In this document: positions 855-44,875 of the stretch, one piece after another | Layout of the letters: each line of letters starts with the position of its first letter | How positions within the stretch are numbered: the first letter of the stretch is position 1 | The notes under the pieces: generated by a model | What the model was told of the DNA's origin: nothing | Databases searched by the model: none | The model's input: the letters and a program-made list of their open reading frames with translations, nothing else | NCBI GenBank assembly: GCA_010909165.1 | Contig: MU008174.1 | Coordinates: forward strand, 930,001-994,000 | DNA length: 64,000 nucleotides | Direction of reading: 5' to 3' | DNA from: Anthoceros angustus | Taxonomy: Eukaryota; Plantae; Anthocerotophyta | Made by a program: the position numbers and the translations under genes

Positions 855-1049
855 AGTTAGAAGTGCAGACCGCGTTGGTTAGGGTTTGCTTAGCTTAACC
901 CAGCGTGGTCATACCCTTTGGTATCTGCTACTGAAGAGGTACAACTCTTCAGACATAGGCTATGAAAGCCTATCTCTTGTAATCAAACGTTGTCAATCAG
1001 TAAAGCACTAATCTTTGATCAAAACTCACTTCCACAAATACCTTTTACA
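855..1049 (+). repeat. Copia-1 5' LTR
   Basis: Ends ...ttttaca, followed 3 bp later by the PBS; homologous to 12231-12424. Confidence 0.9.
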
Positions 1050-1052
1050 ACT

Positions 1053-1064
1053 TGGTATCAGAGC
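1053..1064 (+). promoter_or_regulatory. Primer-binding site (tRNA-iMet) of Copia-1
   Basis: tggtatcagagc. Confidence 0.92.
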
Positions 1065-1359
1065 TCCTTGTTTCATAAGAAAAGGAAAAATGCACTACGA
1101 CATTGTTATTGTTGTGGTTATAGCTTACGCATTTCTTTGTAATGATAGATATACTTGTCCTTTAAAAATTATTAAATATATGGCTATATATTACACTAAC
1201 ATGTTTTTATCATTATAGCTTGAAATTGCTGTTTGTTCTAAATGGTTTGGTTATGCCTCCAACATCTCATATTCCTAGATAAATCTGGGTAGAACAATTC
1301 TTCTTAAGCTGCTAGGTATTCACTCTCTAGCACCTTTTTCATACTTCATTAGCAAGTCC

Positions 1360-1962
1360 TTGTCTTCTTATATTCTTCTTAATCCCTTGTTCACCTTATC
1401 TTCAATTATGGCTAGAAGACACAACAAGTCTTCCTCACATAGGAGATCACAAGATCGTCACCACAATGGTCGACATCATTCGTCTAGCAATTCTAGAAGA
1501 TCATCCACATCAAGGAATTATCAGCAACTAGGTCACATACTTGCTGGTGTCTTATCAATGTTCTTCAACAATCAACGAACAGAAAAAACAGCTTTGGACT
1601 CCTCCACCAATCCCTCTAGTTCAGAACATTATACTTATCATCCTCAAATACAATCCAACAAGCCTTGGTCGAGGAGCTCTAATTCTGATTTATTGAGGTA
1701 CTGTGGAGAGCACTTGAAGAGCACTAGTACTCGTCATCGAAACTCTCTTGTTTACACACCAGCTACGCCAGTTGCTTCTCATACCAGATCCTCGCCTTGC
1801 CGCAGTCATTCCAATGTTAGCAAAGCGTCTATGACTCACCAGAATCCAGCAAAGCAATGGTACTATGGAGATGGTAGTTTTGCTTCACCTCCTGCAAGAT
1901 CACTAACTGCCCCTTATCGTTCTTCCGAAGCCTTGGGGACCAAAGTTACATCAAATCATTAG
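1360..1962 (+). CDS. Hypothetical Ser/Arg/His-rich ORF in the 5' internal region of Copia-1 (not recognisably Gag)
   Basis: 200-codon ORF, probable ATG at 1408 (MARRHNKSSSHRRSQDRHH...); low complexity, no domain recognised. Confidence 0.3.
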   Translation: MSSYILLNPLFTLSSIMARRHNKSSSHRRSQDRHHNGRHHSSSNSRRSSTSRNYQQLGHILAGVLSMFFNNQRTEKTALDSSTNPSSSEHYTYHPQIQSNKPWSRSSNSDLLRYCGEHLKSTSTRHRNSLVYTPATPVASHTRSSPCRSHSNVSKASMTHQNPAKQWYYGDGSFASPPARSLTAPYRSSEALGTKVTSNH

Positions 1963-3189
1963 GGGGATAGAACTGAATCACTAGGAGCCTATGTATCTAT
2001 CAAGACCAACTCTAATGGCAATCCTCCTGCTCAAATTTCTCAGCATAACTCTCAAAATCTACAAGTTGACATTTGAGAGCTGCCCAATTCTTAGCTGATT
2101 TTCAGAGACAAAGACAACAACGGACCAGGGAGGTTTCAGCAAGCGTAGTGGTCCCTATTGACGCCCCATCTGCAACTTCCCCAACAACCTATTCCTCAGA
2201 AAATCTAGAGATTCCTGTAGGCGCTAAATCAATCAATTTCGCCTTCAGCTATATCGACCGGCTTGTCACCTTGGGAATCTGCAACCGCCTCCAAATCGAC
2301 CCCACGAGGTGATTGATTCATGCAACAGCTCCAAATCTCCGCCAGATGCGATTTCAGATCAAATTCATTTCGTGCACATTCAATTACTAGTCTTGTAGGC
2401 GCCGGCTTTGATCTCCAGGCAGCATCAACGCCCTCATCCGACGCTCCTATTGCACTTGGCGCGCCATCAATCTGACATCTGGGCCCCTAGATTGACGGAG
2501 GCGCATCTCCAGGGGCCTCGGATGGTTGCGCTTGGGCGAGGAACGCGCATGCCTGCGCCCAACCGACGCACCCCTCAAACGGTGCTCTAAAATGTTATTT
2601 TCGGGACTCGTTCGTGAAACGGTACCGTTTCGCAAACGGACGTGTTTCGAAACGCCGTTTCAAACGTTTCTCTCTCCAGTTGTGGATTGGCCCCTAAGGA
2701 TGCTGGTTGGGACCACCAGATACCTTTTGTACCAGCTGGTGTACCTCTTTAGCCATCGACTACACCTCTTTGGAGCTCCTCGACTCCTTATAAGTAGCCT
2801 CCAGCGGTCGACTTATCAACTATTCCAGTTTTCGCCATCAAGCAAGAGCAATTGTCACCTCCCCTTCAGCAAGACGTCCTTGCCACCCAGCATTACCTCT
2901 ACGAGCAGGCCGGAGCCACTGCACAGGAGCTATTTCAACTGGAGTGCAGCCACCTTTGGAAGCATTTCCATCAACTCTCGGCCTCTGTGACCTCTGCTAT
3001 CAACGCTATTCAGCGCCTTGCTTCTGTATTTTCACCGACTGACCGAGGCACCGTCCACTAGTCATCTGAACCATAATTCTTTGTATTCCCTTGTTATTAT
3101 TATTAATCAAGTTTATATCTTTTGAAGTTTCTCTCGACTCTGGGTCATAACTCATCGTTGGCAACTTCTTTTCGTGACTTGATTATATA

Positions 3190-4280
3190 TATCAGGAACT
3201 TAACTATCGCTAGTTCAAGGACTTTTGTCTTAAGAGGGGGATTCTTAATCAATCTACAGTTCCCTATACTTCTCAGCAAAATGGAGTTGCAGAAAAGGCC
3301 AATGGCGATTTGCTCACCATAGTCTGCGCTATGCTACCTCAACTCCCTACACCCTTCTGGGCCGAAGCGGTTAATACACGGCATATGTGAGCAACAGGGT
3401 CCTCTTCAAGTCAATTCCTGGCCGGACTCCCTTTGAGTGCTAGCATGGAAATAAGCCTCTTTTTACTAATCTTCGTATTTTTGGCTGCTCCGCCTATGCT
3501 CATATTCCTTCCCAGCTTCGCGACAAGCTCTCTGCCAGAGCTCGCAAGCTCGTGTTTGTTGGCTATGGCGAGGATCGTAAGGCTTACACATTAGTAGACT
3601 TGGATACCTACGCTATTCTATATGCTCGCACAGTCACCTTTGATGAGGCTCAGTTAGCACCTGGTCGTTCTGTGTCCGTGGACTCTGCTCCGGCTACACC
3701 AAACCATGTTGTTACTTCCGGCCTAGGTGACCTTATGCCTGAGTTCCTTCCTTAGCTCTCTGTTTTCCCGGACTCCAGTCTCTCCGCAGTTTCTGCACTT
3801 TCCCTGGCCTCTTCACCTCCAGCCGCTCCTATGCCTATAGTTTCTGCTCGAGAGGGGGAAGAAGAACAAGCCATGGTTGATCCTTTGGAAAACAAAAAAG
3901 ACCCAGACCTTGGCGCTCTTACTCCATAAGACCCAGACTTGATGCAGCTAAGTGGAAGCTGGCTATTGATGATGAATATAATTAATTCTCTTATCAAAAA
4001 CAATACTTGGACTCTAGTCAACTTGCCCAAAGGCAGAACCACTTTCAAATGCAAATGGGTTCTCAAAACTAAGTTCCAGGAGGTTAAACCTTGAATTCGC
4101 TATGAAGCGAGATTAGTGGCTGAAGGTTATATTCAGAAAGAGGGAGTAGAAGTCCTATCAGGGCGATAAGGTCTACTCACCTGTAGTTATGGTTGCTTCT
4201 GTGAGATCGCCCCTGGCTTTATATGCCGACCTTAACCTGGAAATATATCAACCTGACGTTTTGTACTGCTTTCCTTTATA
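3190..4280 (+). pseudogene. Copia-1 integrase core and 5' part of reverse transcriptase (frameshifted)
   Basis: FKDFCLKRGI..VPYTSQQNGVAEKAN, WAEAVNT, FVGYGEDRKAYTLVD, NNTWTLVNLPKGR..CKWVLKTK, RYEARLVAEGY, ending TAFL at the insertion point. Confidence 0.9.
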
Positions 4281-5677
4281 GGGTGTGAGCATGGTTAGGT
4301 GACCACTAATTTCGGAAACGGGCGAAACCGTCTCTAAGTGGTGTTTTGCATTACGTTCAGATTTCTTAACAATTGAAATTATGCCCATTTTGACCGATAT
4401 TTTTAGGGCTATTCGCTTTTAACTTCATAGATATATTTAATTTTTTATTTGGAAAATTGATTTATTTGATATATTATTGGTTTAAGTCTTGCTATATATG
4501 CTAGGGACAATTTATTATACAAACTCGTAAGTGACCGACGGGAAGCGAGGCGGAAACGAGCGGATGCTCGTTGACTTTTAAGGGTGATAATGAGGTTATC
4601 CACTTCCATCAGCCGTGCTCCTAATGTTGAGACTCACAAGCATTGGATTTGTGCATGCATCACGCTGGACTGCGAGCTCAACCTTGGACGGCAGGCTATG
4701 AGGACGGTTGTCAGCCATGTGGAGTCCCTACATGGGTTTTGCTAGAGCTATGTCGTGCGGGCAATAGGTGGTGTGACGGTGATTGTGCGCAGGTCGCTTG
4801 GGGTCGGAACCGCTTACTACCGGATTTGGTAGCTCGGTGGTGCAGTGGGCGGTGGCTTTGTGCGAGGCGTTTGGGTCCGTCGGCCGTGCGGCGGCGTGGC
4901 GTGGGCGTTGTGGTGCGGCGGCGTGGTGCGGCGGCGAACTCGAGGCAGCCACCGCTTGAGGTTTTCCTGGTGAGTCCCTATATGTCTTCGCTAGAGCTTT
5001 CTCATGCGGAATAGTAGGTGTGACGGCGGGCGGTGATTGTGCGCAGGTCGCTTGGGGTCGGAACCGCTTGTCGAAGTTTCTGGCCGGTTGGGAGCTCGGT
5101 GGTGCGAGCAATAGGCGGTGGGTTTGTGCGGAAGGCGTTTGGGTTCGCCGGCGTGCGGCGATCCGCCTTCACAGAGCGAGCGCGTAGTGCGCCAAACGGG
5201 AGTGGTGCGGACAAGGCACCGCTTGAGGTGAAGGACACCATGTCACTAGCAGTAGGGTGAAGGCTCGGCGTGTGGCGGAGCGCTGGCGATACTTCCGGTG
5301 GTGTGTCAAGCGCCTCTGTGCAAGCAAGATGGACAGAACGCTAGGCGCCAAGGCTAGGTTGGATAGAGCGCAAAGGTGTCTGGCTGCAAGGACACGACAT
5401 TCTGAAAAATTCGGGGAGCATTGGTGTTGGCACTACGGTGATATGGAATTGTCAACTACGGTGTGAATGTGAGATGTCTTTGAACTACAGTTGGACTAAA
5501 GGAGGCTATTGGAGGTGAAGATGAGATCAAGAGGCATTTTGGGGATGTCACTAATGGGAACGATGGATACCTCTTGGGGATCACCGACCTACTGTCTGAC
5601 ATAGAGTGGACGCATGTTGATAGTCTTGTTGAGAAGTATGGGCGGGCTCCACTGTTGCATCAAAGGGTGCCACGTTT

Positions 5678-6545
5678 GTGGCACTTGGGTTCCTAATCGA
5701 GAAGAAGCTTGGCAAGCGTGTGAATTGGTTTGAGTACTATTTAGCTGAGAAGAGGAAGCAGGATAAGGCGATGCGATGGAGAAGAAATCACAGTGTGGAA
5801 GTCCCATCTGCAGAGAATACAACGATTCTTCACAACTGTTGTGGTGGCGGTGATGATGCAGAGGCGGAGGTTGATGTGGAAGAGTGTTCCACTCTGTCGA
5901 GCGGGCAGAAGCGACCAGGCGATCCTCCCAAAGAATCTGGAGCTCTCGAGTTGGGAAGAGGAAGCCTGAAGGCCATGAAGAAGGACGGACCTCCGTGCAA
6001 AGAATGTAGAAGAGGAGGCGGCAAGAAGGGAGACGAGGAGTCTCCAATTGATTCTGCGGTGGCGGCGAGAAAAGTGACACCGGCCGCTCGTGTATTGAGC
6101 CATGGGCACCAAAGGTTGTCATGGATGAGGTCTGTGGAAAAATTCGTGCAGAGTTGGAAGCTTGTGCTGCGGAGGAGGCTGTTTTGTCAAAAGATGGGGA
6201 GGAGGCACTCTTGGATTTGGGCAACACCAAGGTCCAGCTTGCCGACATGGTCATGAATAGTGGAGGGCTTGACGACGAGAGTATTCGCGAGACTCTGTAC
6301 AGCATTCGAAATTCTGTGCTTGACAAAACTAAATATTCCGAGGGTGTTTCTGACCAGTTGAAGGAGAAAAAAACTGTGAGGAACAAGCTCCGGGACACCC
6401 TAGCTTCTCTTGAAAACATGAGGATGTTCTCCAGCGCGTTCAACAGCTAGGCACAGAACATGGATCACCTGCGTGGGTGTCGGCTCCCTGCCTCTCCCGC
6501 CAAGTCATGCCCCCGTCTGTAACGGCGTGTAGTGTTTGTACGCGG
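5678..6545 (+). pseudogene. Accessory ORF of the DNA transposon: basic/acidic N-terminus, coiled-coil-like segment, ends at CSVC plus a GTAAGT donor
   Basis: Overlapping ORFs 5678-6256 and 6121-6450 join by a frameshift; another frame continues ...PPSVTACSVCTR|gtaagt. Confidence 0.45.
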
Positions 6546-7017
6546 TAAGTGTGGATTCTTCTTGCACACGGGACGAGGTGTCCGCACTGATGTTTTCCTT
6601 ATGGTGATGTGCTGCACAGGGTTGGGTGCTCCTGGTGACGTTCACGGGATGGTGAGGTGGTGGTAGGGGTGCTCAAGGGGGTGGTGACTCATGTGTTCTC
6701 TGGTGGAAGGGTGGGTGATCACTTGGACGGGATGGTGAGGAATTGGTCTGTGTTCATATCGGGTGTCTGGTGAGCTTTTGGTGGCCTTGGTGATGTAGTG
6801 CATGGCTTGTGTGCAGGTTATGGCCTTCGTACTGTAGGGGTAGGTCGGTGGGCAGCTGGTGGCATTCGTGATGTAGTGGTAGGTTGGTGGGCAGGTGGTG
6901 GCCTCGGTGATGTCCTGGTTTCCTGGTGGATGGGTTGCTGGACTTGGTGATGTAGTGGTGGGGTGGCGGACAGGAGGTGGCCTTGGCACCACCTAGTCAT
7001 GTGGTGCCAAGGCCAAG

Positions 7018-7260
7018 GTGATCCCTTTCTCACGCAACCAGTGGTTTTCCTTCAAAGCTGCAAGCTTCTCGTGTGTCCTAAAGTGTAATGTGTGTCATGG
7101 CAGGTGGTACGCCTGTAACGAGATGGTCTTCACTCCATGTGGCCACTGCTTCCACGATATCTGTATCGGGCACTTGACAAACATTGTTGCTGCCCACGCC
7201 TGTGGTGCAATGATGTGCCCGCATCATGGTTGAGAGCGAAGGGTTGGTGATCAAAGCACC
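7018..7260 (+). pseudogene. RING-H2-like zinc finger fragment inside the DNA transposon
   Basis: KCNVC...TPCGHCFHDICI...ACGAMMC has C-x2-C, C-x-H-x2-H-x2-C and a variant C-x4-C; a frameshift continues into PASWLRAKGW. Confidence 0.65.
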
Positions 7261-7974
7261 GGAGAAGCTCCTTCCATGGGAGCAGGACCAGAGACACTTG
7301 GGAGAAAGAGTTCCTCGAGTGCATTGGAGACCCGCGACCATGACACCGATGGAAAGACATTGAGTCACAATCACCGGACAATTGGTTGGCCACACCCAGC
7401 AGCAAAAAAATCTTGGAGTCTCCAATATGTATGTTCCACAGTTCTCCAGTGTTTGTTGTCTTGTCCATTTTCGCTGTTGGAAGTCTGCCTGACTAAATTT
7501 TCTTGGAAGTCCGCTCGACTAAATTTTGTCATATACAAAGATCTCGAACTCGTCCAGGTGGTGCAATTATGCCAACTTGACGCCGATGTCAACATATTTC
7601 TCCCTGCACCGTGTAGCTGATGAATTTGCTGCTTGCAAGGCCCGAAGGGAGGCACATGAAGCCTACGTGAATTCCTTCGCACCCCAATGCCCGGAGGAAA
7701 AGCCTCGTGTTGTTCGCGCATGTTTGGGCAGCGATTACTCAGGTACAGTGGTGCTAGACTCACAAATTGAAGATGACGTTGTCCCCACAGCAGGCAGCCA
7801 CACGAGCAGCCCTCCGTTCCTGGACATAGCTCCTACTCCACCAAGGCGGCCGTACACAAGGTCCCCCCTGGGGTTGAAGTTGGTGAGGAATGCAGACGGC
7901 AAGTTGGCATGTGTGCGTGTTCCTCTGCAAGGACATCAGGTGTGGGTTTGTGAGGGCATTGCTTTGTTGAAACT

Positions 7975-10300
7975 AGACTTTGTTGAAACTAGCTTCTTCT
8001 CATGCCCATCTTGGTCAGAACCAACGACTTGGTATTGAAAACGGCGCCACCTGAGGACGGACTGAGGAAGCTTATCATTCGATGACTCGGCGGGCCAATT
8101 TGCCCCACCCAGCCGCCACAAGTGCCTCAAGAACATGCGAGGTTGTGCCATCCAAATATTGCCTCCTTCGCACACAAAGCAATTTCGACAACATCCTCGA
8201 CAGATACAACACATGTGTTGCACTACACTCTTGAACAAGCCGTCACCTTCTTGGGGAGCACATATGTCACATGGACTGACATTGACCTCTGGGATGCACA
8301 CTTGAAAGACAACCGCATAGCATTGAAAGCGCCCTTGAGAAAGGCCATTTCCACATGATACCCAAGAATAAGACAAGTTCCGCTCCCGCAGCTCTTCACA
8401 AAATACGGCTTCAATTTCTCAAAAGTTCGCTGCCCAATTGAAATGTCGATGTTTCGGAACCGCAGTAGAATTCGCACACATTAACAGCGATTTCATTACA
8501 ACATCCTCGACAGATACAACACATGTGTTGCTCGACTACACTCTTGAACAAGCTCACACCTTCTTGGGGAGCACATATGTCACATGGACTGACATTGACC
8601 TGGATGCACACTTGAAAGACAACCGCATAGCATTGAAAGCGCCCTTGAGAAAGGCCATTTCCACATGATACCTAAGAATAAAGACAAGTTCCGCTCGCAG
8701 CTCTTCACAAAATACGGCTTCAATTTCTCAAAAGTTCGCTGCCCAATTGAAATGTCGGGATGCTCTTCGAATCAGTAGAATTGCCTCGCACATCACGAAC
8801 AGATTTCATTACAACATCAGAACGGTGGTATCACCGATGGATGGCCAATATCAAAACGTGCAACACACTTCCAACGACGGACACGAGGTCACCAAGTGAT
8901 GCCAACTAAAATGGAACAACTCCAAAACATCACCAAACCGCATGTGATCACCATTCCATCATCCACAACACCAACACATCCACCACATCACTAAGGGCAA
9001 ACAGTAGCTCCACCTACTCCATGACATCACCAATCCGTCCACCTTATCACCATGCCATCATCCACATCACCAACGCATCAATCAACAAGATAGCAGACCA
9101 CCACATCACCACCGTCCCGCACATCATCCACGCGCCCACTAAAATCACCCAGCGACCACCCCAATACGCAAGCAACCACAACACCCCGTCCTCCCCACAC
9201 CAAACTGGGAACCCGCCTTGCCGCCCAAACATAACCAGTGCAGGAATCAACATCACCAATCAGCCCAAACCATCACAAGGCCATACAGGCATCACATAGC
9301 CCTTCCGCTCAACACCAACTGCCCACCCCATATCACCGGTCCCTAAATCACAACACCGATGCATACGAGAAGCCTACGTGAACACCCTTCGACCCCAATA
9401 CCATCATGCCCAAGAGTCAAACCACGAATTTGGAAGGTAGTGCTAACATATAACGACACCGTGAAGTACAAACAAGCATGGAAGGTGAGGGAGGCATGTA
9501 TGAAGGTTCGCACTCACAACACAAGCATGGAATCCATGATATTCATCTCACCGTGAAGTATCCAAGAAGTGGATGATGTGCTGGTCAAAAGTGTTTGGTC
9601 CGACGTAGGCGCTTGGTGTCCTTTGTGTTGGAGGAAGGTCGAGGCGAGCTCCTGCACTGCGTAACGCCGGCTTTCACATCATCCGAGATCACATCGACCT
9701 AAGCTTCCTTCCGACCCGCACCACATACCTTGGCCCCGACAATCCTTCCCACCCCGCACTCTGCAGATCGGATCCGCTCGACTCACACCAATGTGCTTGG
9801 CGAGGGAATCGATGGTCATCCGCATCCGGCGACAAAATGATATTCAGGCGTATTTACGGCTCGCGGTGATCGCCGACCAACATCCTTCAAATTCTTACAT
9901 GCAGTGCTCATATTCCTCATGAGAACAAGAACAACTCTTCATCTTTCCCGATCGATTGCGGGAGTCGAAAGTCCTTCAGAGGAAGCTCTTCAAAAGTACT
10001 ATAGATCTCACGGCGACATTGCACCGAGAACTCACTTGTCATCCGCAAGAATTGCTCCAAGCTCCCTTGCTAGTTGGCGGCGCGAGATTGTGCGGTGTAT
10101 CAACCCCAACGACCTTGAAATAACGCTGCTGCATCGCGCGGACACGCACTCGGCTTGTGGAGGTGGAGGTCGATGTTGCCGCCGCACTGCCTACTATGTC
10201 CACCGGTTCATTCCTCGCTTTGCGCTCTCGCAGCTCGCCAAAGCCCCGCCTCTCCGCAGACGCTTCCTCAAATACCGCTGCTGACTACAAGGAGAGCGGG
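7975..10300 (-). pseudogene. Transposase remnant (N-terminal and Cys-rich parts); catalytic C-terminus not found
   Basis: Minus strand fragments: DSLAKHIGVSRA; RKLRSDVISDDVKAGV; SNTKDTKRLRR..HFLDTS; HPDISIGQRTFEKLKPYFVKS..YHVEMAFLKGAFNAMR; LRWRRFQYQVVGSDQDGHEKKLV. About 8185-8495 is duplicated at about 8497-8815. Confidence 0.65.
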
Positions 10301-10795
10301 CCATCATGGGCGTAACCACCCCAATCGCTTGAGAAACTTCCACACACAAGTCGGCTATTCTCGCACAATCGGCGATACCGCACAATCCATGCCGGAAACC
10401 TTGCCACACAACGCATCGCGCGGACTTCGCCCGCCTCCTCTCCGTGCATTTGCACAGTGTGTGTATGTACGCTCCACACCGCAGAACAAGCTTTTCACAT
10501 CAATTCAAAGAACATATGCCATGAATGCATCCCAAAGCAAGACCCACCGTGTCCACAGTGACATCAACGGGATAGCGTATAATGGGCGAAGGAAGTCCGC
10601 TTTGGTTATGCACGATCGGTTCTTGCCTTCACAAGAGCAGGAAAACACGCTGGAGCACACATTTTTATGTTCCCGCGGAGGTTCCTTCCCGTGTGTAATT
10701 TTGAATTTCGGTGACACAGAGGCTGGTCCATGTGACCAAATGACACAACCAGTTTTTCTATGCTGCGTGCCACCAAAGCGTGCGGCAGCCCTATA

Positions 10796-11990
10796 GTCAT
10801 CTGGAAGAAGAGATCATCTATATGGATTAACCAGAAGACTATGAAGATAAGCAAAATCCAAACAAGGTGTGCAAACTTATTCGCTCTATTTACGGATTAA
10901 AGCAAAGTTCACGTTTATGGTATGAGAGAATGGACTCTTACCTCTAGAAGATAGGATTTATCCGAAGTGAAGCCGATACAAATATCTATGTACTGCGTAA
11001 AGGACAGCTCTCTTGTGCTGGTTGCATTATATGTTGATAGCTAGTTATTCTCGGCAATAATATTTCATGAACTAGTCAACAATATTAAAGCTGACCTTAG
11101 CAAAGAATTCGAGATGAAGGAATTCGGCAAAGTAGAATATATTCTTGGAATGCATGTACATAGAGATACCACTGGTGCTATTTATCTCCATCAAGGAAGT
11201 TATGTAGCTAGTATGATAAAACGATTCAATTTGGAGAATGCACAAGCGGCAGCCACACCTGGCGCCGTAGGTGTTAAGCTTTCTTTTGCTACCTGTCCAT
11301 AATCTGAACTGGAAAAGAAAGAGATGAAAAATATTCCGTATTGTATGGGAGTTGGTACTCTCACGTTCTTGAGTAATCAAACGAGACCATATATCTCAAA
11401 TACTGTAAATGTTGTTGCTCAGTTCTCAGGGAATCCAGGAAAGGATCATTGGGTTGCTCTTAAACTCATTATGCGGTATCTCAAGGGTATACCAAAATTA
11501 AGGCCTATGCTTCTAACCTAGCGAAAAGAAGCACCTGCTACTGACATGTTTTGTCGATCGCTTCAAATGCGATTTATCACGACACCGATTTAGTATCTCA
11601 ACATATTGCTTTCTTCGGCTCCATCAAGCAGTTAATCGTCTTGTAAAAACAAGCAACTATTTCCCTATCGTCAAGAGAATCGGAGTACAAAGAACTCACA
11701 GAAGCCACTAAGGAGGTTGAATGGGAAAGAAAGCTATGTGAAGATCTGAGTATGATGCAAGAAGGGCCAACAATGCTTAATTGTGACAATATATCAGCAA
11801 TTGCTCTTGTCGCTAAACCTGTCTTTCATATGCATGCACGCATGAAGCATATTGAGATCCAACATCATAATATTCGTGACGCTGCTAAGAGAGGAATTGT
11901 TAAGTACAATATGTACCAACAGGCAACAACACCGCAAATGTACTGACAAAATCCTTGCCAAAGTTCAAACACTGCTTCTACAGAGAAGGG
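10796..11990 (+). pseudogene. Copia-1 3' part of RT and RNase H
   Basis: HLEEEIIYMD, VCKLIRSIYGLKQSSRLWY, LYVD, MKEFGKVEYILGMHV, TRPYIS..VNVVAQFSGNPGKDHW, CDNISAIALVAKPVFH..MKHIEIQHH. Confidence 0.92.
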
Positions 11991-12230
11991 CTTGGATTGG
12001 TTGATTGTAGCAGCTTTATGAAGCAGGACAAGTCACTCATTTGGTGAGGCTTATCATTCAACAAGACATTCAGTTACTTGAAGTTGACAGCTGTTGCAGA
12101 TCGCTTGCTTCAACCTTACTTACAATCGGTGAAGATCGGTGAGCTGAGTTTAGTTAAAGATTGTAGCACTCATACAACAAGTGATTCATAGTTCTTAGAT
12201 TTTGATAACGCAACTACTCTGAGAGGGAGA

Positions 12231-12424
12231 ATTAGAAGTGCAGACAGTGTTTGTTAGGATTTGCTAAGCTTAATCCAGCGTGATCATACCCTATGGTATC
12301 TGCTACCGAAGAGGTACAACTCTTCAAACACAAGCTATAAAAGCCTACCTCTTGTAATCAAATGTTGTCAATTAGTAAAGCATTAATCTTTGATCAAAAC
12401 TCGCTTCCGCAAATACCTTTTACA
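12231..12424 (+). repeat. Copia-1 3' LTR, preceded by PPT gagagggaga (12221-12230)
   Basis: About 90% identical to 855-1049. Confidence 0.9.
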
Positions 12425-12877
12425 ACTACTAATGCTTCCGCCACTTCCGAAACTAGTTCCGGCAAACATCTCCGAAGGTTGTTCGTAAGATGAGAAAGGA
12501 CACAACGTTCTCTCGGTATTGTATTAAAGCCTACTAATGAACTAAATCCATAATCATTGTTATTAAATCATCTGCATGATGCAAAATGCTTCTACATATG
12601 CATCTCTGACTATCAACCATTGTATCTCTTCATAAAACACTTCTTTAATAATAAAAAGAAAAGTACACTGGTAATGAAATCTAAGAATTAATTCAACTCA
12701 ATTCTCTTTTCTCATTTATGCTCTAAATGCATGAAGTTTTACTTCAAAATTGGCGAGTGACATGTGAGGAGTGGTAGGTGGCAAGTGGCGAGAGAGGAGT
12801 GACAAGTGGCGAGTGATTAAAATTAAATATGTTTTTCACTATCCTTATATATACACCCTAACTCAAACGTGCTACAA

Positions 12878-13185
12878 GCTGCTACAACTCACTCAACACC
12901 CCCTCTCATTGCGGATTCACACGACATCAGTCGAGTGGAAAGATCATGACATGCTCTATCATGTGCGTGAGATATCCAACTAATAGTGAGCCCCCTATTC
13001 AGTATTTGGTGGCTTCTTCAGCTTGCGAGACACATGATTTGTGCTGTGAGTGAGAAAATTGCAAGATACCTTAGTTTTAGCGAATAGCGTTTAAAAAAAA
13101 CTATCGCTGCTACAACTCACTCAACACTCCCTCTCATTGTAGACTCACAATACATCAGTCGAGTCGAGAGATCATGATATGCTCT
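12878..13185. repeat. About 228-bp tandem repeat; its second unit is split by Copia-2 and resumes at 20254
   Basis: gctgctacaactcactcaacac at 12878 and 13106; the unit-1 continuation gctct-atcatgtgcgtgagatat reappears at 20249 onward. Confidence 0.85.
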
Positions 13186-16100
13186 TGATGAAAATCATGC
13201 TAAGCTCTAAGCATTAAGATGTTTGTATTACAATGATGAATAATAGAAAGTACAAAGCCTATTTATAGGCAAGGTGGTTAGGTGGTTACAACCATAAGTT
13301 GTTATAGCCACCAGTTAGTTGCAACTAATATAACAACTAACCTCCTAGAACAACTAATTAAATAATTACTTAATGCCCAAGAAATAAACTAATGCATTAG
13401 TTTACCTTTACTTATAAGTAAAAGTGCCCTAGTGAATAGTGCCCTAAACTTAGTGTATTTTATCACTCCCACTCACTATGAACATAGGGGTGAAAATTAG
13501 CTACAAAATGAGCCTGAATATGCTAGCAAACCTCCTACTAGATAGGAAGTTACCAGCTTAGAAAGCAAACTAAAAATTTTAAGCAGCTGACATTAAACTA
13601 ATGAATTTAAAAGTATTTCAGGAAACTAACTTAAAACAGAGGAATTCACGAAAAAGGAAAAATAAGGGGATAGTACCCCTATGGTATCCCACCCATCCAC
13701 ATCGGTTGGTGGATGGGTGGCACAGCCTCAATTATTCCCTGGGCCGTCATTCATCGGGGCAGCGCTATGCTCACACCTAGCGATGGCGACACCTTCATCG
13801 CCGAGCCTCAAGGCCGTGGTAGTGCATGTGCCCATGTGGAGGCTTGAGCTGGGTGTGTCGTGCTGCCAGCTGCCTTGGCAATGCATTCAGACCTGGCCAG
13901 CAGCCCCTGCGTATAAGGCTGTAGGCGCATTTTTGGCCAGTAATTCAGCAGGTCTCTCGCGGGCTGGCGATATTCTTGGGGCGGCTAATCTTGATTCGAG
14001 GCGCTCCATGGGGCGTTCCTATTGCTCCACAAATTGCTGATCTTTCCTTGATTGTGGTGGAAATCCGGAGGACCAGATCGGCGAAGTTCCGTCGTGGAGC
14101 TCCCCGTGTGGCAAATCAACAGTACCTTGTACTTAGCCAATGGTGATGTGTGGGTGAGTGCCGTGAGATCGAAACCGTCGCCCAAACATGGGAGGAGACC
14201 AAGTGGGGAGATGAGTTGGATCCTCCCACAAGAACTCAACATGTAGTGGTACCCATCTCTCTTCGTGAGAAGAGATTGTCACTCGTCGCCTTCAAGAAGT
14301 CGGAGCTCGAGTGAAGATGAAAATTGTGAGTGAGAAAATTGCAAGATACCTTAGTTTTAGCGAATAGCGTTTAAAAACTATCGCTACAACTCACTCAACA
14401 CTCCCTCTCATTGTAGACTCACAATACATCGAGTCGAGAGATCATGATATGCTCTTGATGAAAATCATGCTAAGCTCTAAGCATTAAGATGTTTGTATTA
14501 CAATGATGAATAATAGAAAGTACAAAGCCTATTTATAGGCAAGGTGGTTAGGTGGTTACAACCATAAGTTGTTATAGCCACCGCTTAGTTGCAACTAATA
14601 TAACAACTAACCTCCTAGAACAACTAATTAAATAATTACTTAATGCCCAAGAAATAAACTAATGCATTAGTTTACCTTTACTTATAAGTAAAAGTGCCCT
14701 AGTGAATAGTGCCCTAAACTTAGTGTATTTTATCACTCCCACTCACTATGAACATAGGGGTGAAAATTAGCTACAAAATGAGCTGAATATGCTAGCAAAC
14801 CTCCTACTAGATAGGAAGTTACCGACAGAAAGCAAACCAAAATTTTAAGCAGTGACATTAAACTAATGAATTTAAAAGTATTTCGTGAAACTAACTTAAA
14901 ACGGAGGAATTCACGAAAAGGAAAAATAAGGGATAGTACTATGGTATCCCACCCATCCACATCGGTTGGTGGATGGGTGGCACAGCCTCAATTATTCCCT
15001 GGGCCGTCATTCATCGGGGCAGCGCTATGCTCACACCTAGCGATGGCGACACCTTCATCGCCGAGCCTCAAGGCCGTGGTAGTGCATGTGCCCATGTGGA
15101 GGCTTGAGCTGGGTGTGTCGTGCTGCCAGCTGCCTTGGCAATGCATTCAGACCTGGCCAGCAGCCCCTGCGTATAAGGCTGTAGGCGCATTTTTGGCCAG
15201 TAATTCAGCAGGTCTCTCGCGGGCTGGCGATATTCTTGGGGCGGCTAATCTTGATTCGAGGCGCTCCATGGGGCGTTCCTATTGCTCCACAAATTGCTGA
15301 TCTTTCCTTGATTGTGGTGGAAATCCGGAGGACCAGATCGGCGAAGTTCCGTCGTGGAGCTCCCCGTGTGGCAAATCAACAGTACCTTGTACTTAGCCAA
15401 TGGTGATGTGTGGGTGAGTGCCGTGAGATCGAAACCGTCGCCCAAACATGGGAGGAGACCAAGTGGGGAGATGAGTTGGATCCTCCCACAAGAACTCAAC
15501 ATGTAGTGGTACCCATCTCTCTTCGTGAGAAGAGATTGTCACTCGTCGCCTTCAAGAAGTCGGAGCTCGAGTGAAGATGAAAATTTTGTGAGTTGCCTTG
15601 AGTTGGATCCTCCCACAAGAACTCAACATGTAGTACCCATCTCTCTTCGTGAGAGATTGTCACTCGCCGCCTTCAAGAAGTCGGAGCTCGAGTGAAGATG
15701 AAAATTTTGTCGGGTTGCCGATTGGAGGTCTCAAATAGTCCTTCTCTTCTAATGAGCGGATATGATGACTTGACAAGCAGGAGGAGGACTCAAATGGCGG
15801 GAGTCAAGCCGGTGTTGAAACCGCTCTTCACAAAAGCGTGTGCGAAGGAAGAGTCAAGCCGCCTCCCATGGTCAATGGTGATTTCAGACGCCAAAGGTGC
15901 CAATGATCTCCACAAACTCGCCTCTGGTAAGTTAACCTGTCTGCATGTATGCTACAAAATGATAGATAGCATGTGTACTAATGGGATGATCCATTGGCAG
16001 ATCTAGGGGTTGGTAGGCTTCAGCTGGATGAAACTGAAGACACTAGAGGAAAGTGGAAGGGCAAGAACAAGGTGGTAGCAGAGGGTGGTTGAAAAGAAAG

Positions 16101-17464
16101 TAAGTAGGAATAAATGGCATTAGGGTGCTTACTATAAGTATGCTTAATATGTCCTTCATACTCTGCACATGGGGCGTTCCTATTGCTCCACAAATTCTTG
16201 ATCTTTCCTTGATTGTAGGTGGAACCGGAGGACCAGATCGGCGAAGTTCCGCATGGAGCTCCCCGTCTGTGGCAAATCAACGTACCTTGTACTTAGCCAA
16301 TGGTGATGTGTGGGTGCCGAGTGCCGAGATCGAAACCGATCGCCCAAACATGGGAGGAGACCAAGTGGGGAGATGAGTTGGATCCTCCCACAAGAACTCA
16401 ACACAGGTAGTACCCATCTCTCTTCGTGAGAAGAGATTGTCACTCTCGTCGCCTTCAAGAAGTCGGAGCTCGAGTGAAGATGAAAATTTGTCGGGTTGCC
16501 GATTGGAGGTCTCGTCGAAGCTGTCCTTCTCTTCTAATGAGCCGGGATATGATGACTTCGACGTTGGTGAGGAGGACTCCGTGGCGGGAGTCCAAGCTGG
16601 TGTTGAAACTGCTCTTCACAAAACTGTGTGCGAAGGAAGTCCAAGCTAGCGCTCTGCTCCTGTGGTCAATGGTGATTTCGCAGACGCCAAAGGTGCCAAT
16701 GATCTCCACAAACTCGCCTCTGGTAAGTTAACCTGTCTGCATGTATGCTACAAAATGATAGATAGCATGTGTACTAATGGGATGATCCATTGGCAGATCT
16801 AGGGGTTGGTAGGCTTCAGCTGGATGAAACTGAAGACACTAGAGGAAAGTGGAAGGGCAAGAACAAGGTGGTAGCAGAGGGTGGTTGAAAAGAAAGTAAG
16901 TAGGAATAAATGGCATTAGGGTGCTTACTATAAGTATGCTTAATATGTCCTTCATACTCTGCACATGGAGCAGCTTCCAACCACACCATTTTTATTCCTT
17001 TTTTATGGCAAACATATTGTGCTGGGGCACGGTAACTTTCCTTATCCCTGTGGCATATCAAGTGGTGAACCAAGCTTCCCATTGTATGGGAAGCTTGGTT
17101 AAGAAGATAGCAGCCAGGTATCTCATATCCTGTCCTTGTTCCTTCAGGGACCACTCTTTGTGGGATAGCAATCCTCAAGTGATCTGTGCCCACACACTTG
17201 TCTATCCCTACAACCATATAGTTTTTTAAAACTTTATGCTTACAAATAGGAGCAACCTACTTAAACAACATTTAATAATTATTTTATCTATATATTAACA
17301 TAACTCTAAATTTTGTGAATAGGAGATGCCTGAGCTGGAAGCTGGGAATACTATGAAGATTATTTAGAAATAGAGGAGGAACTTGACCATTTGGACAAAC
17401 TTTGTGGCTTGTAGTTAAGGTTAACTTTTAGTTGCCCACTTAAGTTGCTCTATAGCTAGCTGAG

Positions 17465-17950
17465 TTAGGGTGGCTTAGACTTGATATCTAGTATTCCTAA
17501 ACTCTTCATATGCTTGCTACGTAAATCCCGACCTAATGATTTGGTTAATATATCGGCCGGATTTTCCTGAGTTTGGATGTAATTTTTATCTATTGTTTTG
17601 TTTTCTAACATTTCACGAATATAGTGGTATTCAATTGCTATGTGCTTTGTTCTGGAGTGGAAGACGGGAATTCTAGCTAAGGCTATGGCCTCCTGACTAG
17701 CACTGAACAAAGGTGTGGGATCATTTTGTGGATGATGGAGCTCGCTTAATGCTAACCTACTCCAAACTATATCTTTTGAGACTGAGGTTAGGACTTTATT
17801 CTCAGACTCAGTGCTTGACAAAGCAATAGTAGGTTGTTTCTTACTTGACCAAGAAATTGGAGCTCCTCGAGTAGAACATAGCGGATCTGATTTACGTGTC
17901 CTGATCATAGTCGAGATCGCATATACTTTTAAGATTAATTTGGGTATGCC
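17465..17950 (-). pseudogene. Duplicate of Copia-2 RNase H
   Basis: GAPISWSSKKQPTIALSSTE...SRTKHIAIEYHYIRE, near-identical to 19122-19620. Confidence 0.85.
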
Positions 17951-19121
17951 GGGTTTGTACTTAGCCAATGGTGATGTGTGGGTGCCGAGTGCCAGTGAGA
18001 TCGAAACCGATGCTGCCCAAACATGGGAGGAGACCAAGTGGGGAGATGAGTTGGATCCTCCCACAAGAACTCAACACAGGTAGTACCCATCTCTCTTCGT
18101 GAGAAGAGATTGTCACTCTCGTCGCCTTCAAGAAGTCGGAGCTCAGTGAAGATGAAAATTTTGTCGGGTTGCCGATTGGAGGTCTCGTCGCCTTCTTCTA
18201 ATGAGCCGGATATGATGACTGGACAAGCAGGAGGAGGACTCGTGAGTCCAAGCTGGTGTTGAAACTGCTCTTCACAAAACTGTGTGCGAAGGAAGTCCAA
18301 GCTAGCGCTCTGCTCCTGTGGTCAATGGTGATTTCGCAGACGCCAAAGGTGCCAATGATCTCCACAAACTCGCCTCTGGTAAGTTAACCTGTCTGCATGT
18401 ATGCTACAAAATGATAGATAGCATGTGTACTAATGGGATGATCCATTGGCTAGAAGGTAGGCTTCATGGATGAAATCAAGACACTAGAGGAAAGTGGAAG
18501 GGCAAGAACAAGGTGGTAGCAGAGGGTGGTTGAAAAGAAAGTAAGTAGGAATAAATGGCATTAGGGTGCTTACTATAAGTATGCTTAATATGTCCTTCAT
18601 ACTCTGCACATGGAGCAGCTTCCAACCACACCATTTTTATTCCTTTTTTATGGCAAACATATTGTGCTGGGGCACGGTAACTTTCCTTATCCCCAGGGCA
18701 TATCAAGTAGGCAGCTTTAACCAAGCTTCCCATTGTATGGGAAGCTTGGTTAAGAAGATAGCAGCCAGGTATCTCATATCCTGTCCTTGTTCCTTCAGGG
18801 ACCACTCTTTGTGGGATAGCAATCCTCAAGTGATCTGCCCACACTTGTTCATCCCTACAACCATATAGTTTTTTAAAACTTTATGCTTACAAATAGGAGC
18901 AACCTACTTAAACAACATTTAATAATTATTTTATCTATATATTAACATAACTCCTAAATTTTGTGAATAGGGTCTGTTTGGGCACTGAAGCGGGAAGCTC
19001 AGGAATACTATGAAGATTATTTAGAAATAGAGGAGGAACTTGACCATTTGGACAAACTTTGTGGCTTGTAGTTAAGGTTAACTTTTAGTTGCCCACTTAA
19101 GTTGCTCTATAGCTAGCTGAG

Positions 19122-20025
19122 TTAGGGTGGCTTAGACTTGATATCTAGTATTCCTAAACTCTTCATATGCTTGCTACGTAAATCCCGACCTAATGATTTG
19201 GTTAATATATCGGCCGGATTTTCCTGAGTTTGGATGTAATTTTTATCTATTGTTTTGTTTTCTAACATTTCACGAATATAGTGGTATTCAATTGCTATGT
19301 GCTTTGTTCTGGAGTGGAAGACGGGAATTCTAGCTAAGGCTATGGCCTCCTGACTAGCACTGAACAAAGGTGTGGGATCATTTTGTGGATGATGGAGCTC
19401 GCTTAATGCTAACCTACTCCAAACTATATCTTTTGAGACTGAGGTTAGGACTTTATTCTCAGACTCAGTGCTTGACAAAGCAATAGTAGGTTGTTTCTTA
19501 CTTGACCAAGAAATTGGAGCTCCTTTAGTAGAACATAGCGGATCTGATTTATGTGTCGGATCAAAGCATAGTCGTATCGGCATATACTTTTAAGATTAAT
19601 TTGGGTATGCCGGGTTTGTACTTGTAAGTCAATCCAGTGTGCATAGTTCCTTTGAGGTATCTGAAGATACGTTTGACTGATAGCCAATGTTCCCTTCCAG
19701 GGTTCTCTAAGAACTGTGAACATGCACTAACTTCAAAAGAAATGTCTGGTCTAGTGAAGTTGCTTAAATAAACTAGAGTGTCAACAGCATGTTTATATGG
19801 AACTGCTGACATTTCTTGCTTCTCCGTATTTGTTTTACGGTTCATATCTGAGGTGAGCCTAATGCCACTAACAAAGGGGGTAGTGGCGGGCTTAGCTTCT
19901 TCTAGTCCAAACTTTGCTAAGCTCTCTTTGATATACTTAGTCTGAACTAAGCTTAGAGTTTTGTTGCCTCTATCCCTTATAATATTGACGCCAAGGGCAT
20001 AAGTCATCTCTCCTATGTCAGTCAT
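19122..20025 (-). pseudogene. Copia-2 RT C-terminal half and RNase H
   Basis: MTDIGEMTYALGV, TRPDISFEVSACSQFLENPGREHW..VKRIFRYLKGT, ISWSSKKQ..ALSSTE, ENPADILTK. Confidence 0.92.
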
Positions 20026-21985
20026 CTAAAAATGACTTCTTAGCCATGCCTTGATTTCAGCTAGGAGAGAGAGAGAGGTTAGGTGGTTACAACCATAAGT
20101 TGTTATAACCATCAGTTAGTTGCAACTAATATAACAATTAACCTCCTAGAACAACTAATTAAGTAACTACTCAATGCCCTATAAATAAACTAATGCATAA
20201 GTAAAGGTGCCCTAGTGAATAGTGCCCTAAATTTAGTGTATTTTATCAGCTCTATCATGTGCGTGAGATATCTAACTAATAGTGAGCCCCCTAATCAATA
20301 TTTGGTGGCTTCTTCATATTGCGAGACGCATGATTTGTGATGTGAGTGAGAAAATTGCAAGGTACCTTAGTTTTAACGAATAACGTTTAAAAAAACTGTC
20401 TTGGCGTCTTTAATATTGAACTTGTCAAGTAGTTGATCCATCTAGTACTCCTGGTAGAAGTAGGAGTAGTGGTCTCAATTCATTGTGGTGCTTAAACTAT
20501 CCTCGAAGGTCCGCCTTATCTGAACGGGCGTATTGATGGGTTCAGCTTATTTATTGATAGGTTCGCATTATCTCAGATAGGTTCGCATTATCTCAGATAG
20601 GTTCGCATTATCTCAGTCGCTACACTAGTGCCAACGCCAGAAGGCGCAAACTGGCTAGTTGTTTAGAAGAGGAGGCTACATCGTAATGGCACCATCATAT
20701 CATAAAATCCATCTTAAAATTTAAATGCTTTTAGCATTATATATAATAAATCTAAGATTAGTCTAATATTTTTATTGCAGATGGCTATTCATTACCATTG
20801 GGCACATGATTGAACATGTGATGGATGTTGAATTGTGGGATCAATTGAATTTGTAGCCATTGACAATCTTGCATTTGATCTAGATCTGAACATAGCTTTC
20901 CAAATCCCTTTGATCTTAGTGTCTTCCCAGTCGATCTTATGGTAGATTGCTAACTTATTTTTGTTTATGGTAGATTGCTAACTTATTTTTGTATAACTTG
21001 TTGAAAAATTATTCGTGTCTATCGGATCACGGGTGAGATCACCTTCAACAACAACAATTTTATTGAATTTTACTAAGGATTGACATACTATCATAGGACT
21101 CGGCTCTCCAGGCAATATGCTCCATAAAGTAACCTAGGCCATGAGCACAAGAGGGTTCCACTTGCAATGAGTGTAGAGCGTTTAACTATGACATTCTTAA
21201 GGTTTATCACAGCCAAACAAATTTCTCAGGGTGTAGAAACCAAAACAAACTTATCAATTCCCTCCACAATAACAAACTTATCAATCCCCTCCACAATATA
21301 TATGATATTTTCGTAACCGAACTCGTGTATATCGGATTGCGACAAACCAACGAGTATAATTTAAAATCAAATTTCAAGCTTATGAACATATAAGGGTTAG
21401 CCGTGTTGCCCCAAAGGGTTTGGGGAGCCACCGCGGCGAAGCAGGGCATAGGGGTATGGGGCATAGGGCATAGTGCAAGGGGCATGGGGCATGGGCCATG
21501 GGTGGATCGCGCCGACATGGGCATCGGAAAGAAGTTATCGCATGGGCTTATTGACGAAGCCATACGGACACTGGAACTACAGAGCGCTCGTCTTAACGAG
21601 TTGCCGGATGGTGGCCCACTGCTTAGTGGGCCGTCCGCACTGAGTTTTCAAGGTTAAAGAGCCGCCGGCAGCAATGCTGGAAGATTCCTCTAAACGAATG
21701 ACAGACTCACGGTTTGGAATTGGGCCACGACGTTAACGTTCGAGAGTCTACATTGATCTAGGGAGATATTGCCGTTGAGAAAAACCCATCAGTCGGTTAC
21801 CAAGGGTTTGAGTGCTGGAGCCCAGGAAAACAAAGATGAGTCCTGTCAAGGATGGAGAGCCCAGCAGAAACCTGCTGAGAGACCACAGGTGACTACGTTC
21901 ACATCCTCTTGTATAACTCTATCTGCTGATGCAGTTACAATGGCTTGCCTTTAGTACCTTCTAGCAAGCCTGCTTCACCTGCTTT

Positions 21986-39810: not shown

Positions 39811-40448
39811 TTAATCATAACTATGGTCATAATCATTTATCTCATCCTCATCCATCATATTGTCATGGTCATCAGTATGCTCAACAGCACCATGCTCATG
39901 ATCAATAGCACTGCGTGTTCGGTATCACCATGTGCGATAACAACATGCTCAATAGCATCGTACTCCATAATGACATGACCATTAGCAACATTTTGAATAC
40001 TAACACCAATTTGAGCATTAACATCATAATACTCAATTAAAGTTGGATCTATGAATCTGGTACCATCTGCTGATGAAACAAAACCAAACTCTGATCCATT
40101 ACCATGCTGCTCGGGCCCCCATAACTCTACAACGTTGTTTCCAAACATGGGCTCATATGTGGTCCAATAACCTGCAAGCTGGTTACTTGATAACTCAGTA
40201 ATTGTGTCAAGATTACTGACTATATCACTCTCCTTGTAGAACTGTTTTCTACACAAGGGGCATGAAATGGGCAGAGGACCACAAACCAACCATTTTTGTA
40301 GACAAGCTCTATGAAAGATGTGCTTGCATACATTGGTTTTGATAATTTCTTCACCCAACTCAATAGGATCAAGGCAAATCACGCACGTTACTTTTTCATC
40401 ATCTTGACCTTGGAACAAACATGTTGAGAGACATGGTGGTAAGTCCAT
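39811..40448 (-). CDS. Intronless RING-H2 zinc finger protein (putative E3 ligase) with Asp/His-rich tail
   Basis: CVICLDPIELGEEIIKTNVCKHIFHRACLQKWLVCGPLPISCPLCRK. A probable 1-bp indel near 39915 shifts into DHEHGAVEHTDDHDNMMDEDEINDYDHSYD* (stop at 39811). Confidence 0.75.
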
Positions 40449-40896
40449 GGGTTCTTGATCTTTATGAATTGTGATTCACTAGGATTGAGCATGGTACCCC
40501 ACACCCAGAATATTTTCAGATGCCTAGCTCATGTATTTTCCCGCTCACCTATTGTAAGGCTCTTTCGAACCTCCTAACTAGTATATCTCTTGGTGTTGTA
40601 AGGGCTATATCTGCACTCTTGTAAAATTCTTCTTCTTCTTCTTCTTCTCTTAATGAAGTGGAATGTTGTAAGGTTCTTCCAAACCTCTCAAATAAGTGGA
40701 ATATAAAGTACTCGATATCATAAAAAAACACTTAGCGCCTATTACTTTTTCTTGGTACATATTTTCTTTTATTCAAACGAGCGGACAATTATGATGGCCA
40801 TAGACTCTTGGAATTCGTGGCCCTCTAAATCATGTGGAATGAGCAAGGCCCTTCAAGGCCCTTTGAATTAACTGGAATATGTAAGGTCCTTGTGGG

Positions 40897-44500: not shown

Positions 44501-44875
44501 CCTGCGCTGCCGAATGCCGCAGTTTGGCACACTTTGTTAGCTGCTTGTCAAAAGTGGAGAAACGTGGAAGTGGGACGCCATGCTTTCCATGAAGCAGTGA
44601 AACTAGATGACAAAGATGCCGCAGCATATGTTTTGATGTCCAACATCTACACCAGTGCCCAGATGTGCGAGGACGCGGAGGAGATGCAGGAGAGGAGGAA
44701 AGGACTGGGTGCGTGGAAGCAGCCAGGCCAGAGCTGGTGGACAGACATAGACGGATTAGTGCACAGTTTTGTGGTTGGGGATACAAAGCATCCCGAGAGT
44801 GAGGAGATATATGCAACGTTGGAACACCTTGTAATTGATTCCTGTCTTCCGCAGTCATCAGAAAATGTAACATGA
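41564..44875 (+). CDS. PLS-class pentatricopeptide repeat protein with E1-E2-E+ extension (organellar RNA editing specificity factor), no deaminase domain
   Basis: Intact 1103-codon single-exon ORF. Repeated P-L-S triplets (W.A.I.GY.Q.G..EAL / F..LLQAC / SLV.MYAKCG), E motifs (HYTCMVDLLSRAGQLDEA; AAAYVLMSNIY), PGQSWW box, HSFVVGD..HP, then stop. True start may be a downstream ATG. Confidence 0.93.
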   Translation: MAHWFSVSGLGLHGASETMGAWRSRGALHSHIWRQGMWLNPAWVDAQKAAVDMHCAHVCMSSSWSSPDDLDHGRPAGAGYRCRVVTAESVSNVCEQGQLAEAVEGLGVLVQTGCRVSKSLFYAVLRKCVVKKDLVLGRRVHALSVKNEYGSDTFLCNHVLRMYAFHDRLQEAMDVFTVVAKPDAFMWSSIMSAHVKHGESKQAVRLYDEMRRSSVKPDGHVFVAALQACAKLADLPTGKQVHADVCASGLRPDVFVSHCLVEMYAKCGSLEDAERVFDGIPQKDVVIWNAMIAGYAQYGMGREALHLYSAMQDDGNAAPTSGTFVHLLQACASMGALGLEKGQQLHAQIREQGLQLDAILGCSLVNMYAKCGSLLDAHSVFDRLAEKDVVAWTALIAAYSQQGLGEEALHLYSSMREEGIHPPDSVTFLCLLQACGSVGAAALKRGKQLHAQVREEGLDADVGVGCSLVNMYAKCGSLEDAQCVFDGLVQKNVATWTAMISGYSQQGMGQEALRLYSAMKEGGIVAPDSVTFACLLQACASVGEPALEQGKQLHIQLRKQGLEADVVVCSSLVNMYAKCGTLQDAHSVFDELSLYSGMLEGGITAPTSGIYVCLLQACASVGTLALEKGKQLHAQIRGQGLEADGAIGCSLVNMYAKCGSLEDAQMVFGRLCKKDVTSWTALIAGYSQQGMGQEALRLYSAMQIEGIVAPDSVTFVCLLQACANIGTLALGKGKQLHAQIRERGLQTHVVVANSLVSMYAKCGSLEDAQRVFDRLGQKNVVTWTALIAGYSQQGMSQEALNLFNAMQEQGMAPPNSVTFVCLLQACANVAGLHPGRQLHAEIEEQGLQADLTVGHSLINMYAKSGSMIEAQHVFEALPERGVVAWNTLIAGFTREGDSEAVFDLVHKMREDGVQPDDITFLSVLTVCSHVGLVTKGREYFEAMSRSYGITPTAEHYTCMVDLLSRAGQLDEALALARTMPALPNAAVWHTLLAACQKWRNVEVGRHAFHEAVKLDDKDAAAYVLMSNIYTSAQMCEDAEEMQERRKGLGAWKQPGQSWWTDIDGLVHSFVVGDTKHPESEEIYATLEHLVIDSCLPQSSENVT

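Follow-up and report, generated by a model that had tools for sequence, protein, structure and literature searches.

Relic of a probable Sola2 DNA transposon in the reverse transcriptase gene of a Copia retrotransposon of Anthoceros angustus

Sola2 is an established superfamily of DNA transposons, and the best points of comparison for the element described here are its members in the dictyostelids Dictyostelium fasciculatum and Polysphondylium pallidum (DFa-1/2/3 and PPa-1/4/5). These feature AT-rich 4-bp target-site duplications (TSDs) such as AWWT, ATAT, AAAT, and ATTT, and short imperfect terminal inverted repeats (TIRs) with ends of the form GAR...YTC; two of them, DFa-1 and DFa-3, are derivatives with most of the transposase deleted (PMC3627910). 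In land plants, a genome preprint on the conifer Cupressus sempervirens ranks Sola2 first in abundance among the class II superfamilies, although the classification there came from an automated repeat library and the anatomy of the elements was not given (10.64898/2026.07.23.736688). No paper on Sola2 anatomy in bryophytes or other seedless plants was found in the literature. Here, a 64-kb stretch of contig MU008174.1 of Anthoceros angustus (the window, in whose positions all coordinates of this locus are given) is analyzed. It contains a decayed, non-autonomous Sola2-type element of 6511 bp (4281-10791, not assigned to a strand) that splits the reverse transcriptase (RT) gene of an old Copia retrotransposon. 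This copy is an ordinary relic and a new member of its superfamily. The original prediction had presented it as a little-described plant Sola2-type family, a description that holds for the anatomy of such elements in bryophytes but sits poorly with the abundance reported in the conifer.

The element resembles the dictyostelid elements in its 4-bp AT-only flank, its short imperfect TIRs, and its G-initial end, and some of those elements likewise carry a second gene or are deletion derivatives (PMC3627910). It also differs from them in several respects. The dictyostelid ends are GAR...YTC with an AWWT TSD and the second gene is Fanzor1 (PMC3627910), whereas the window copy has GGG...CCC ends, a TATA flanking repeat, and what appears to be a RING-H2-like second gene. 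Furthermore, its host is a land plant, and only the pre-catalytic quarter of the transposase is retained.

The insertion and its flanking repeat can be read directly from the DNA. The element begins with GGG at 4281-4283 and ends with CCC at 10789-10791, and it is bordered by two identical TATA tetramers, a putative 4-bp TSD, at 4277-4280 and at 10792-10795, the latter adjoining the CCC end. When the element and one TATA are removed, joining 4280 to 10796, the sequence across the joint reads ACT GCT TTC CTT TAT AGT CAT CTG GAA GAA GAG. The translated empty site, TAFLYSHLEEEIIYMD*PEDYEDKQNPNKVCKLIRSIYGLKQSSRLWY, is a typical Copia RT in which the joint falls between TAFLY and SHLEEE. No base is gained or lost there, the number of residues from TAFL to LEEE is that of the usual Copia motif, and one copy of TATA is required to rebuild the RT codons TAT-AGT. 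The Pfam family RVT_2 is matched on either side, at profile positions 1-28 and 52-84 in the left flank and 103-138 and 194-241 in the right. The Copia element has defects of its own near the junction, with a +1 frameshift lying 9 nt to its left and a stop codon 10 codons to its right, and the statement that the frame is restored is therefore a short and local one, though specific. The GC content of the element is 50-57%, as opposed to 38-44% in the Copia flanks. No second copy of the element was found in the window by blastn. The coordinates and TATA flanks given in the original prediction proved exact when the sequence was re-read, and its restored RT frame and its reading of the locus as a DNA-transposon insertion are borne out by the rejoined sequence.

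The interrupted Copia element (855-12427, plus strand) is a long terminal repeat (LTR) retrotransposon recognized by its LTRs, primer-binding site, flanking repeat, and Pfam matches. Its LTRs (857-1052 and 12232-12427) are 196 bp in length and 90.3% identical, a tRNA-Met-type primer-binding site, TGGTATCAGAGC, lies directly after the 5' LTR, and both ends of the element are flanked by the 5-bp repeat ACTAA. The Pfam family SH3_retrovirus is also matched. The element is thus structurally complete but decayed, with several frameshifts and stops in pol.

The boundaries of the inserted element can be drawn in more than one way. In addition to GGG...CCC with TATA, the junction can be read as AGGG...CCCT with a 2-bp AT TSD or as TAGGG...CCCTA without a TSD. 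Because flank and ends overlap in sequence, TSDs of 4, 2, or 0 bp all yield one identical empty site, a point at which the original prediction, with the same three readings, was correct. A single insertion with either of the other two boundaries would be at odds with the 4-bp rule of Sola2. It can appeal to the shared empty site and to the fact that one copy has been seen, yet the transposase remnant belongs to a Sola2-like family, and in published Sola2 elements the TSD is AT-rich and 4 bp long and the ends begin with G (PMC3627910). These other boundaries are considered unlikely, and we infer a TSD of exactly 4 bp.

The two ends show limited but structured similarity. The left TIR (4281-4303, plus strand) matches the reverse complement of the right TIR (10769-10791, minus strand) at 14 of 23 positions, the count previously given, and approximately 0.4% of random GGG/CCC-anchored 23-mer pairs in the window reach this level. 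Further inside, the decamer GTGCGGCGGC is found in four exact copies in the window, all four of them within the element. Three of these are on the plus strand at 4886-4935, the first starting 605 bp from the left end, and the fourth, at 10178-10187, is inverted (minus strand) and lies at a distance of 604 bp from the right end. Together with the TIR, this mirrored arrangement supports the two ends belonging to one element, and the equidistant copies may be putative transposase-binding sites. The left subterminal region also contains two direct repeat units of ~254 bp (4738-5260, plus strand; repeat families D9, D13, D14, D15, and D19, with a spacing of 249-254). A tandem array with a 39-bp period and 5.3 copies is located at 6779-6986 on the plus strand, and an inverted, related array is found at ~8941-9330 (inverted pairs I1-I8). 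The two arrays consist of 39/20-bp units of the GGTGATGT type and enclose both the RING exon and the transposase remnant described below.

These observations also bear on the possibility that no transposition took place and that the locus arose by double-strand-break repair or misassembly, with TATA flanking it by coincidence. TATA is indeed a common tetramer in AT-rich flanks. Such an origin is nonetheless difficult to reconcile with a junction that is precise and in frame, with transposase-derived content, with inverted ends, and with subterminal motifs mirrored at equal distances, and it is regarded as very improbable.

The transposase-derived content lies on the minus strand and was delimited with a profile hidden Markov model (HMM) of the transposase family that has 661 positions. 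In all six frames of the window, only positions 27-186 of the profile survive, in collinear pieces. The larger remnant, copy A (7987-8480), covers the zinc-chelating region ahead of the catalytic domain, is spread over three frames, and contains two in-frame stops: 8226-8480 corresponds to positions 27-94, 8130-8222 to positions 113-137, and 7987-8091 to positions 155-186. The E-value of the first piece, 2.8e-12, establishes the homology of the remnant to the transposase family. A partial duplicate, copy B (8557-8771, minus strand), matches positions 30-54 and 61-80 and has its source in a 310-bp tandem duplication at 8188-8818 (2.0 copies). The remnant is also matched by tblastn with the relatives P0003-P0006 introduced below. 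The peptides to which attention had been drawn, IGQRTFEKLKPYFVK..YHVE and WRRFQYQVVG, are present in minus-strand open reading frames (ORFs) at 8223-8477 and 7936-8376. What had been called a reconstructed transposase amounts to roughly a quarter of the protein, all of it upstream of the first catalytic aspartate.

No match to HMM positions 190-661, the catalytic part, was found in six frames anywhere in the window, and the same frames gave no other transposase signal with Pfam or the family HMM. The intact core of three catalytic aspartates (DDD; DFxEN, SDG, HGK..D) that is required of an autonomous Sola2 element is accordingly missing from the window copy. Since the catalytic half is absent, this copy is a non-autonomous deletion derivative, and with its catalytic core lost and its remaining frames broken by frameshifts and stops, it is dead. 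Pfam searches with ten separate ORF pieces gave no match, nor did those with the relatives or the full-length family members. This silence agrees with the observation that the RNase H-like domains of Sola match no Pfam family (PMC5751038). Nothing was found for the remnant in the ESM Atlas or in a word search with the 146-aa ORF, and neither Rfam nor a scan of viral contigs gave a match.

Relatives of the remnant were found among proteins and in contig collections. A phmmer search with the minus-strand ORF at 8223-8477 against 1.84 billion proteins returned P0003, P0004, and P0005 (E 8e-5 to 1e-4), and a cluster look-up supplied a fourth relative, P0006; all four extend into the IDFAENY motif. 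An alignment of the relatives was used to scan collections of genome contigs and metagenome contigs. Among the genome contigs, two animal-like ones were found that are filed under a metagenome-assembled genome of Sedimenticola (L001 and L002); they probably derive from an animal host and were binned with the genome of its symbiont. Encoded on them are a Sola2-like transposase of eukaryotic type, intact with 913 aa, and an apparent mariner-type transposase (L001 1080-3821; L002 438-1514 and 2719-4527). The metagenome contigs yielded 80 loci, mostly on long AT-rich contigs from apparently peat-moss-associated samples, with intact ORFs of 630-660 aa (L004, L013, L014, and L017) and 1106 aa (L043). 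The remnant is 40-48% identical to the moss and animal-like relatives over QRxFExLKPYF...CCCxYHVE. In the ESM Atlas, P0006 retrieved only unnamed animal clusters, one of them with DUF7869. As a family label, DUF7869 was rejected, having no match to L001 or L004 and being absent from the literature.

Unlike the window copy, some of the moss-contig transposases (L003-L082) are intact: they retain the three catalytic motifs and carry a BAH/Tudor-like domain at the C-terminus. In a structural model of L004 (pLDDT 71), residues 202-418 resemble the IstA transposase (Z 10.0, rmsd 3.3, 159 aligned residues) and retroviral integrases (Z 9-9.8), and residues 194-404 resemble Mos1 (Z 8.7). The moss relative (L004:290-2200) is therefore predicted by this model to possess an integrase-type RNase H core, a statement that concerns the relatives and not the window copy. 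Residues 509-633 of the same model form a C-terminal domain that would resemble BAH, Tudor, and chromo readers (Z 6-6.8).

The family can be compared with printed dictyostelid sequences motif by motif. In the family found here, the three catalytic motifs read [IV]DFAENY (D1), W[ST]DGCAxQFKS (D2), and GHGKGxxDGAG (D3), and the aspartates are spaced by 85-95 and 41-42 residues. The corresponding motifs are MDFKENI, FWSDGAKHFKS, and YHGKSDVD in Sola2_DFa-2, with a spacing of 87 and 43, and CDFKENI, FWCDNARHFKS, and YHGKSECD in Sola2_PPa-1, with a spacing of 84 and 52 (PMC3627910). DFxEN, WSDG...FKS, and HGK..D thus occur in the same order and at near-equal spacing in the dictyostelid elements and in this family (PMC3627910). 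Both sets also share an upstream block, R[ST]xFxxxxPxxVK...C..C, and it is this block that survives in the window (IGQRTFEKLKPYFVK...YHVE). On these sequence comparisons, the assignment of the family to Sola2 appears well supported, though it is formally unproven. The Sola2 type originally proposed is upheld by the motif order and spacing of the relatives, by TATA, and by the G-type ends, whose GGG agrees with the GRG ascribed to Sola2 termini in the original prediction. The catalytic motifs are missing from the window copy itself.

Several other superfamilies fit less well. PIF/Harbinger and CACTA elements generate TSDs of 3 bp, hAT of 8 bp, Mutator of 9-10 bp, and Tc1/mariner of 2 bp (TA), and none of these agrees with an empty site that permits 4, 2 (AT), or 0 bp. 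These superfamilies also have Pfam transposase domains of their own, and no such domain was matched by the remnant or its relatives. Sola1 and Sola3 have transposase motifs of their own and, like Sola2, 4-bp TSDs. With piggyBac, the element shares a palindromic 4-bp target made up of A and T and short ends with a G/C triplet, but the piggyBac target is TTAA and its ends are CCC...GGG, as opposed to TATA and GGG...CCC here. The Pfam model of piggyBac, PF13843, matches neither the remnant nor the full-length relatives.

Several points weigh against reading the locus as a Sola2 insertion. The TIR is weak at 14/23, and with a single copy, TSDs of 4, 2, and 0 bp are all compatible with the junction. 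The link to Sola2 consists of motif order, near-identity at D2, and spacing, judged by eye against printed sequences and carrying no E-value. The termini and TSDs of the moss loci could not be defined from paralogue boundaries, from a scan for GRG ends with 4-bp TSDs, or from a scan for short inverted repeats. The best terminus candidate among them, GGG..CCC with TATA on both sides in L029, was discarded as an artefact of a palindrome with 2.4-kb arms, and a candidate in L033 falls inside the transposase gene. The inverted arms of L029 (3347-5737 and 11989-14388) are 91.5% identical and enclose a decayed transposase, constituting either a real palindrome or an assembly artefact. The other moss boundaries fall in variable subterminal repeat arrays, and the copies are decayed and rich in indels. 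In L036 (2560-2880), L048, L050, L060, and L082 (alignment A4), variable tandem arrays of ~32 bp (TTGTGTGTGCT..GGA.GATGATTG.TGGAC) are situated upstream of the transposase and are probably subterminal repeats.

Finally, the remnant might conceivably have been captured by an element to which it is not related. The ends would then be those of some other TIR element, unrelated or unknown, in which a fragment of a Sola2 transposase gene had been captured or nested. Such an origin might be suspected from the survival of only 160 of 661 transposase positions, from the weak TIR, and from the presence of repeat arrays and a second gene in the interior. Both the flanking repeat and the type of ends nevertheless fit Sola2, the six frames contain no other transposase signal, and in the moss relatives, too, the transposase is followed downstream by a RING-like ORF in convergent orientation. 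Capture of this sort is judged quite improbable, and the insertion of a Sola2 DNA transposon into the RT gene of a resident Copia, with duplication of TATA, is considered probable with good confidence.

The Sola2 insertion suggests a plausible history. A cut-and-paste transposon of this superfamily would have entered the RT gene of an already resident Copia and duplicated the 4-bp TATA. In intact members of the family, the gene product is a DDD transposase, ~640-1100 aa in length, that has an RNase H core like that of integrases. Binding of this enzyme to the terminal repeats, which are short and imperfect, and probably also to the mirrored GTGCGGCGGC copies, would precede excision and reinsertion of the element. 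In the window copy, an internal deletion has taken everything between a point immediately ahead of the first catalytic aspartate and the end of the transposase gene.

The interior of the element may also preserve parts of a second gene. Two overlapping and mutually frameshifted ORFs of 192 and 109 aa (5678-6450, plus strand) are a possible accessory-gene part with no significant Pfam match. They are followed by a RING-H2-like finger (C-x2-C-x14-C-x-H-x2-H-x2-C...) at 6997-7233 (plus strand), which faces the transposase remnant in convergent orientation. The finger matches Pfam RING families at E 0.007-0.04, and in the PDB it matches almost exclusively E3 ligases of the RING-H2 type, with a best E-value of 0.017. 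The evidence for a finger of this type appears weak, though the tests agree, and the RING-type second gene in the window is decayed. A search of the moss loci with a relaxed RING-H2 pattern gave seven matches at five independent loci, always on the strand opposite to the transposase. At four of the five, the RING-like ORF lies 7-9 kb downstream and is convergent as in the window; one follows a coiled-coil-like stretch.

An HMM of the moss RING segments matches the window finger at E 0.006. Elsewhere in the window, a 206-aa ORF with a clear RING-H2 finger (39858-40475, minus strand), apparently a host gene, outscores the finger of the element with the same HMM. The RING similarity is therefore generic, and orthology is unproven. 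In tblastn searches against the moss loci, the accessory-ORF pieces from the 5678-6450 region had no match, and the RING piece had one weak match (L015/L016, E 0.005). The distance between transposase and RING finger is ~1.2 kb in the window versus 7-9 kb in the moss loci, and the shorter distance fits a large internal deletion. From their arrangement, the transposase and the RING-like gene seem to travel together, a pairing of transposase and RING-H2 that was found in no paper in the literature. It is possible, though doubtful at present, that the land-plant branch of Sola2 forms a lineage with two genes, the transposase being accompanied by a conserved, convergently oriented gene for a coiled-coil RING-H2 protein, and that the window derivative has lost the catalytic core but kept both ends and the RING region.

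Two other features of the window lie outside the element. To the right of the Copia retrotransposon, 12878-20395 is a block of dispersed and tandem repeats with units of ~0.2-1.3 kb that are 83-98% mutually identical. At 41564-44875 on the plus strand, there is an intact intronless gene for a 1103-aa pentatricopeptide repeat (PPR) protein of the PLS class with E and E+ motifs, likely an organellar RNA-editing factor, and its presence supports a land plant as the host.

Taken alone, this copy matters little: the transposon is dead and internally deleted, and the retrotransposon around it is dead as well. What is gained from it is a cleanly reconstructed empty site of a Sola2-type insertion in a plant, a putative terminus of GGG...CCC with TATA, and mirrored subterminal motifs with which members of the family could potentially be counted across the genome. 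Of more interest is the wider family, with its intact moss-associated transposases, their BAH/Tudor-like tail, and a recurrent RING-like neighbour. If a two-gene lineage of this kind does exist, it would suggest a transposon-encoded factor resembling a ubiquitin ligase that acts on the chromatin of the host or of the element.

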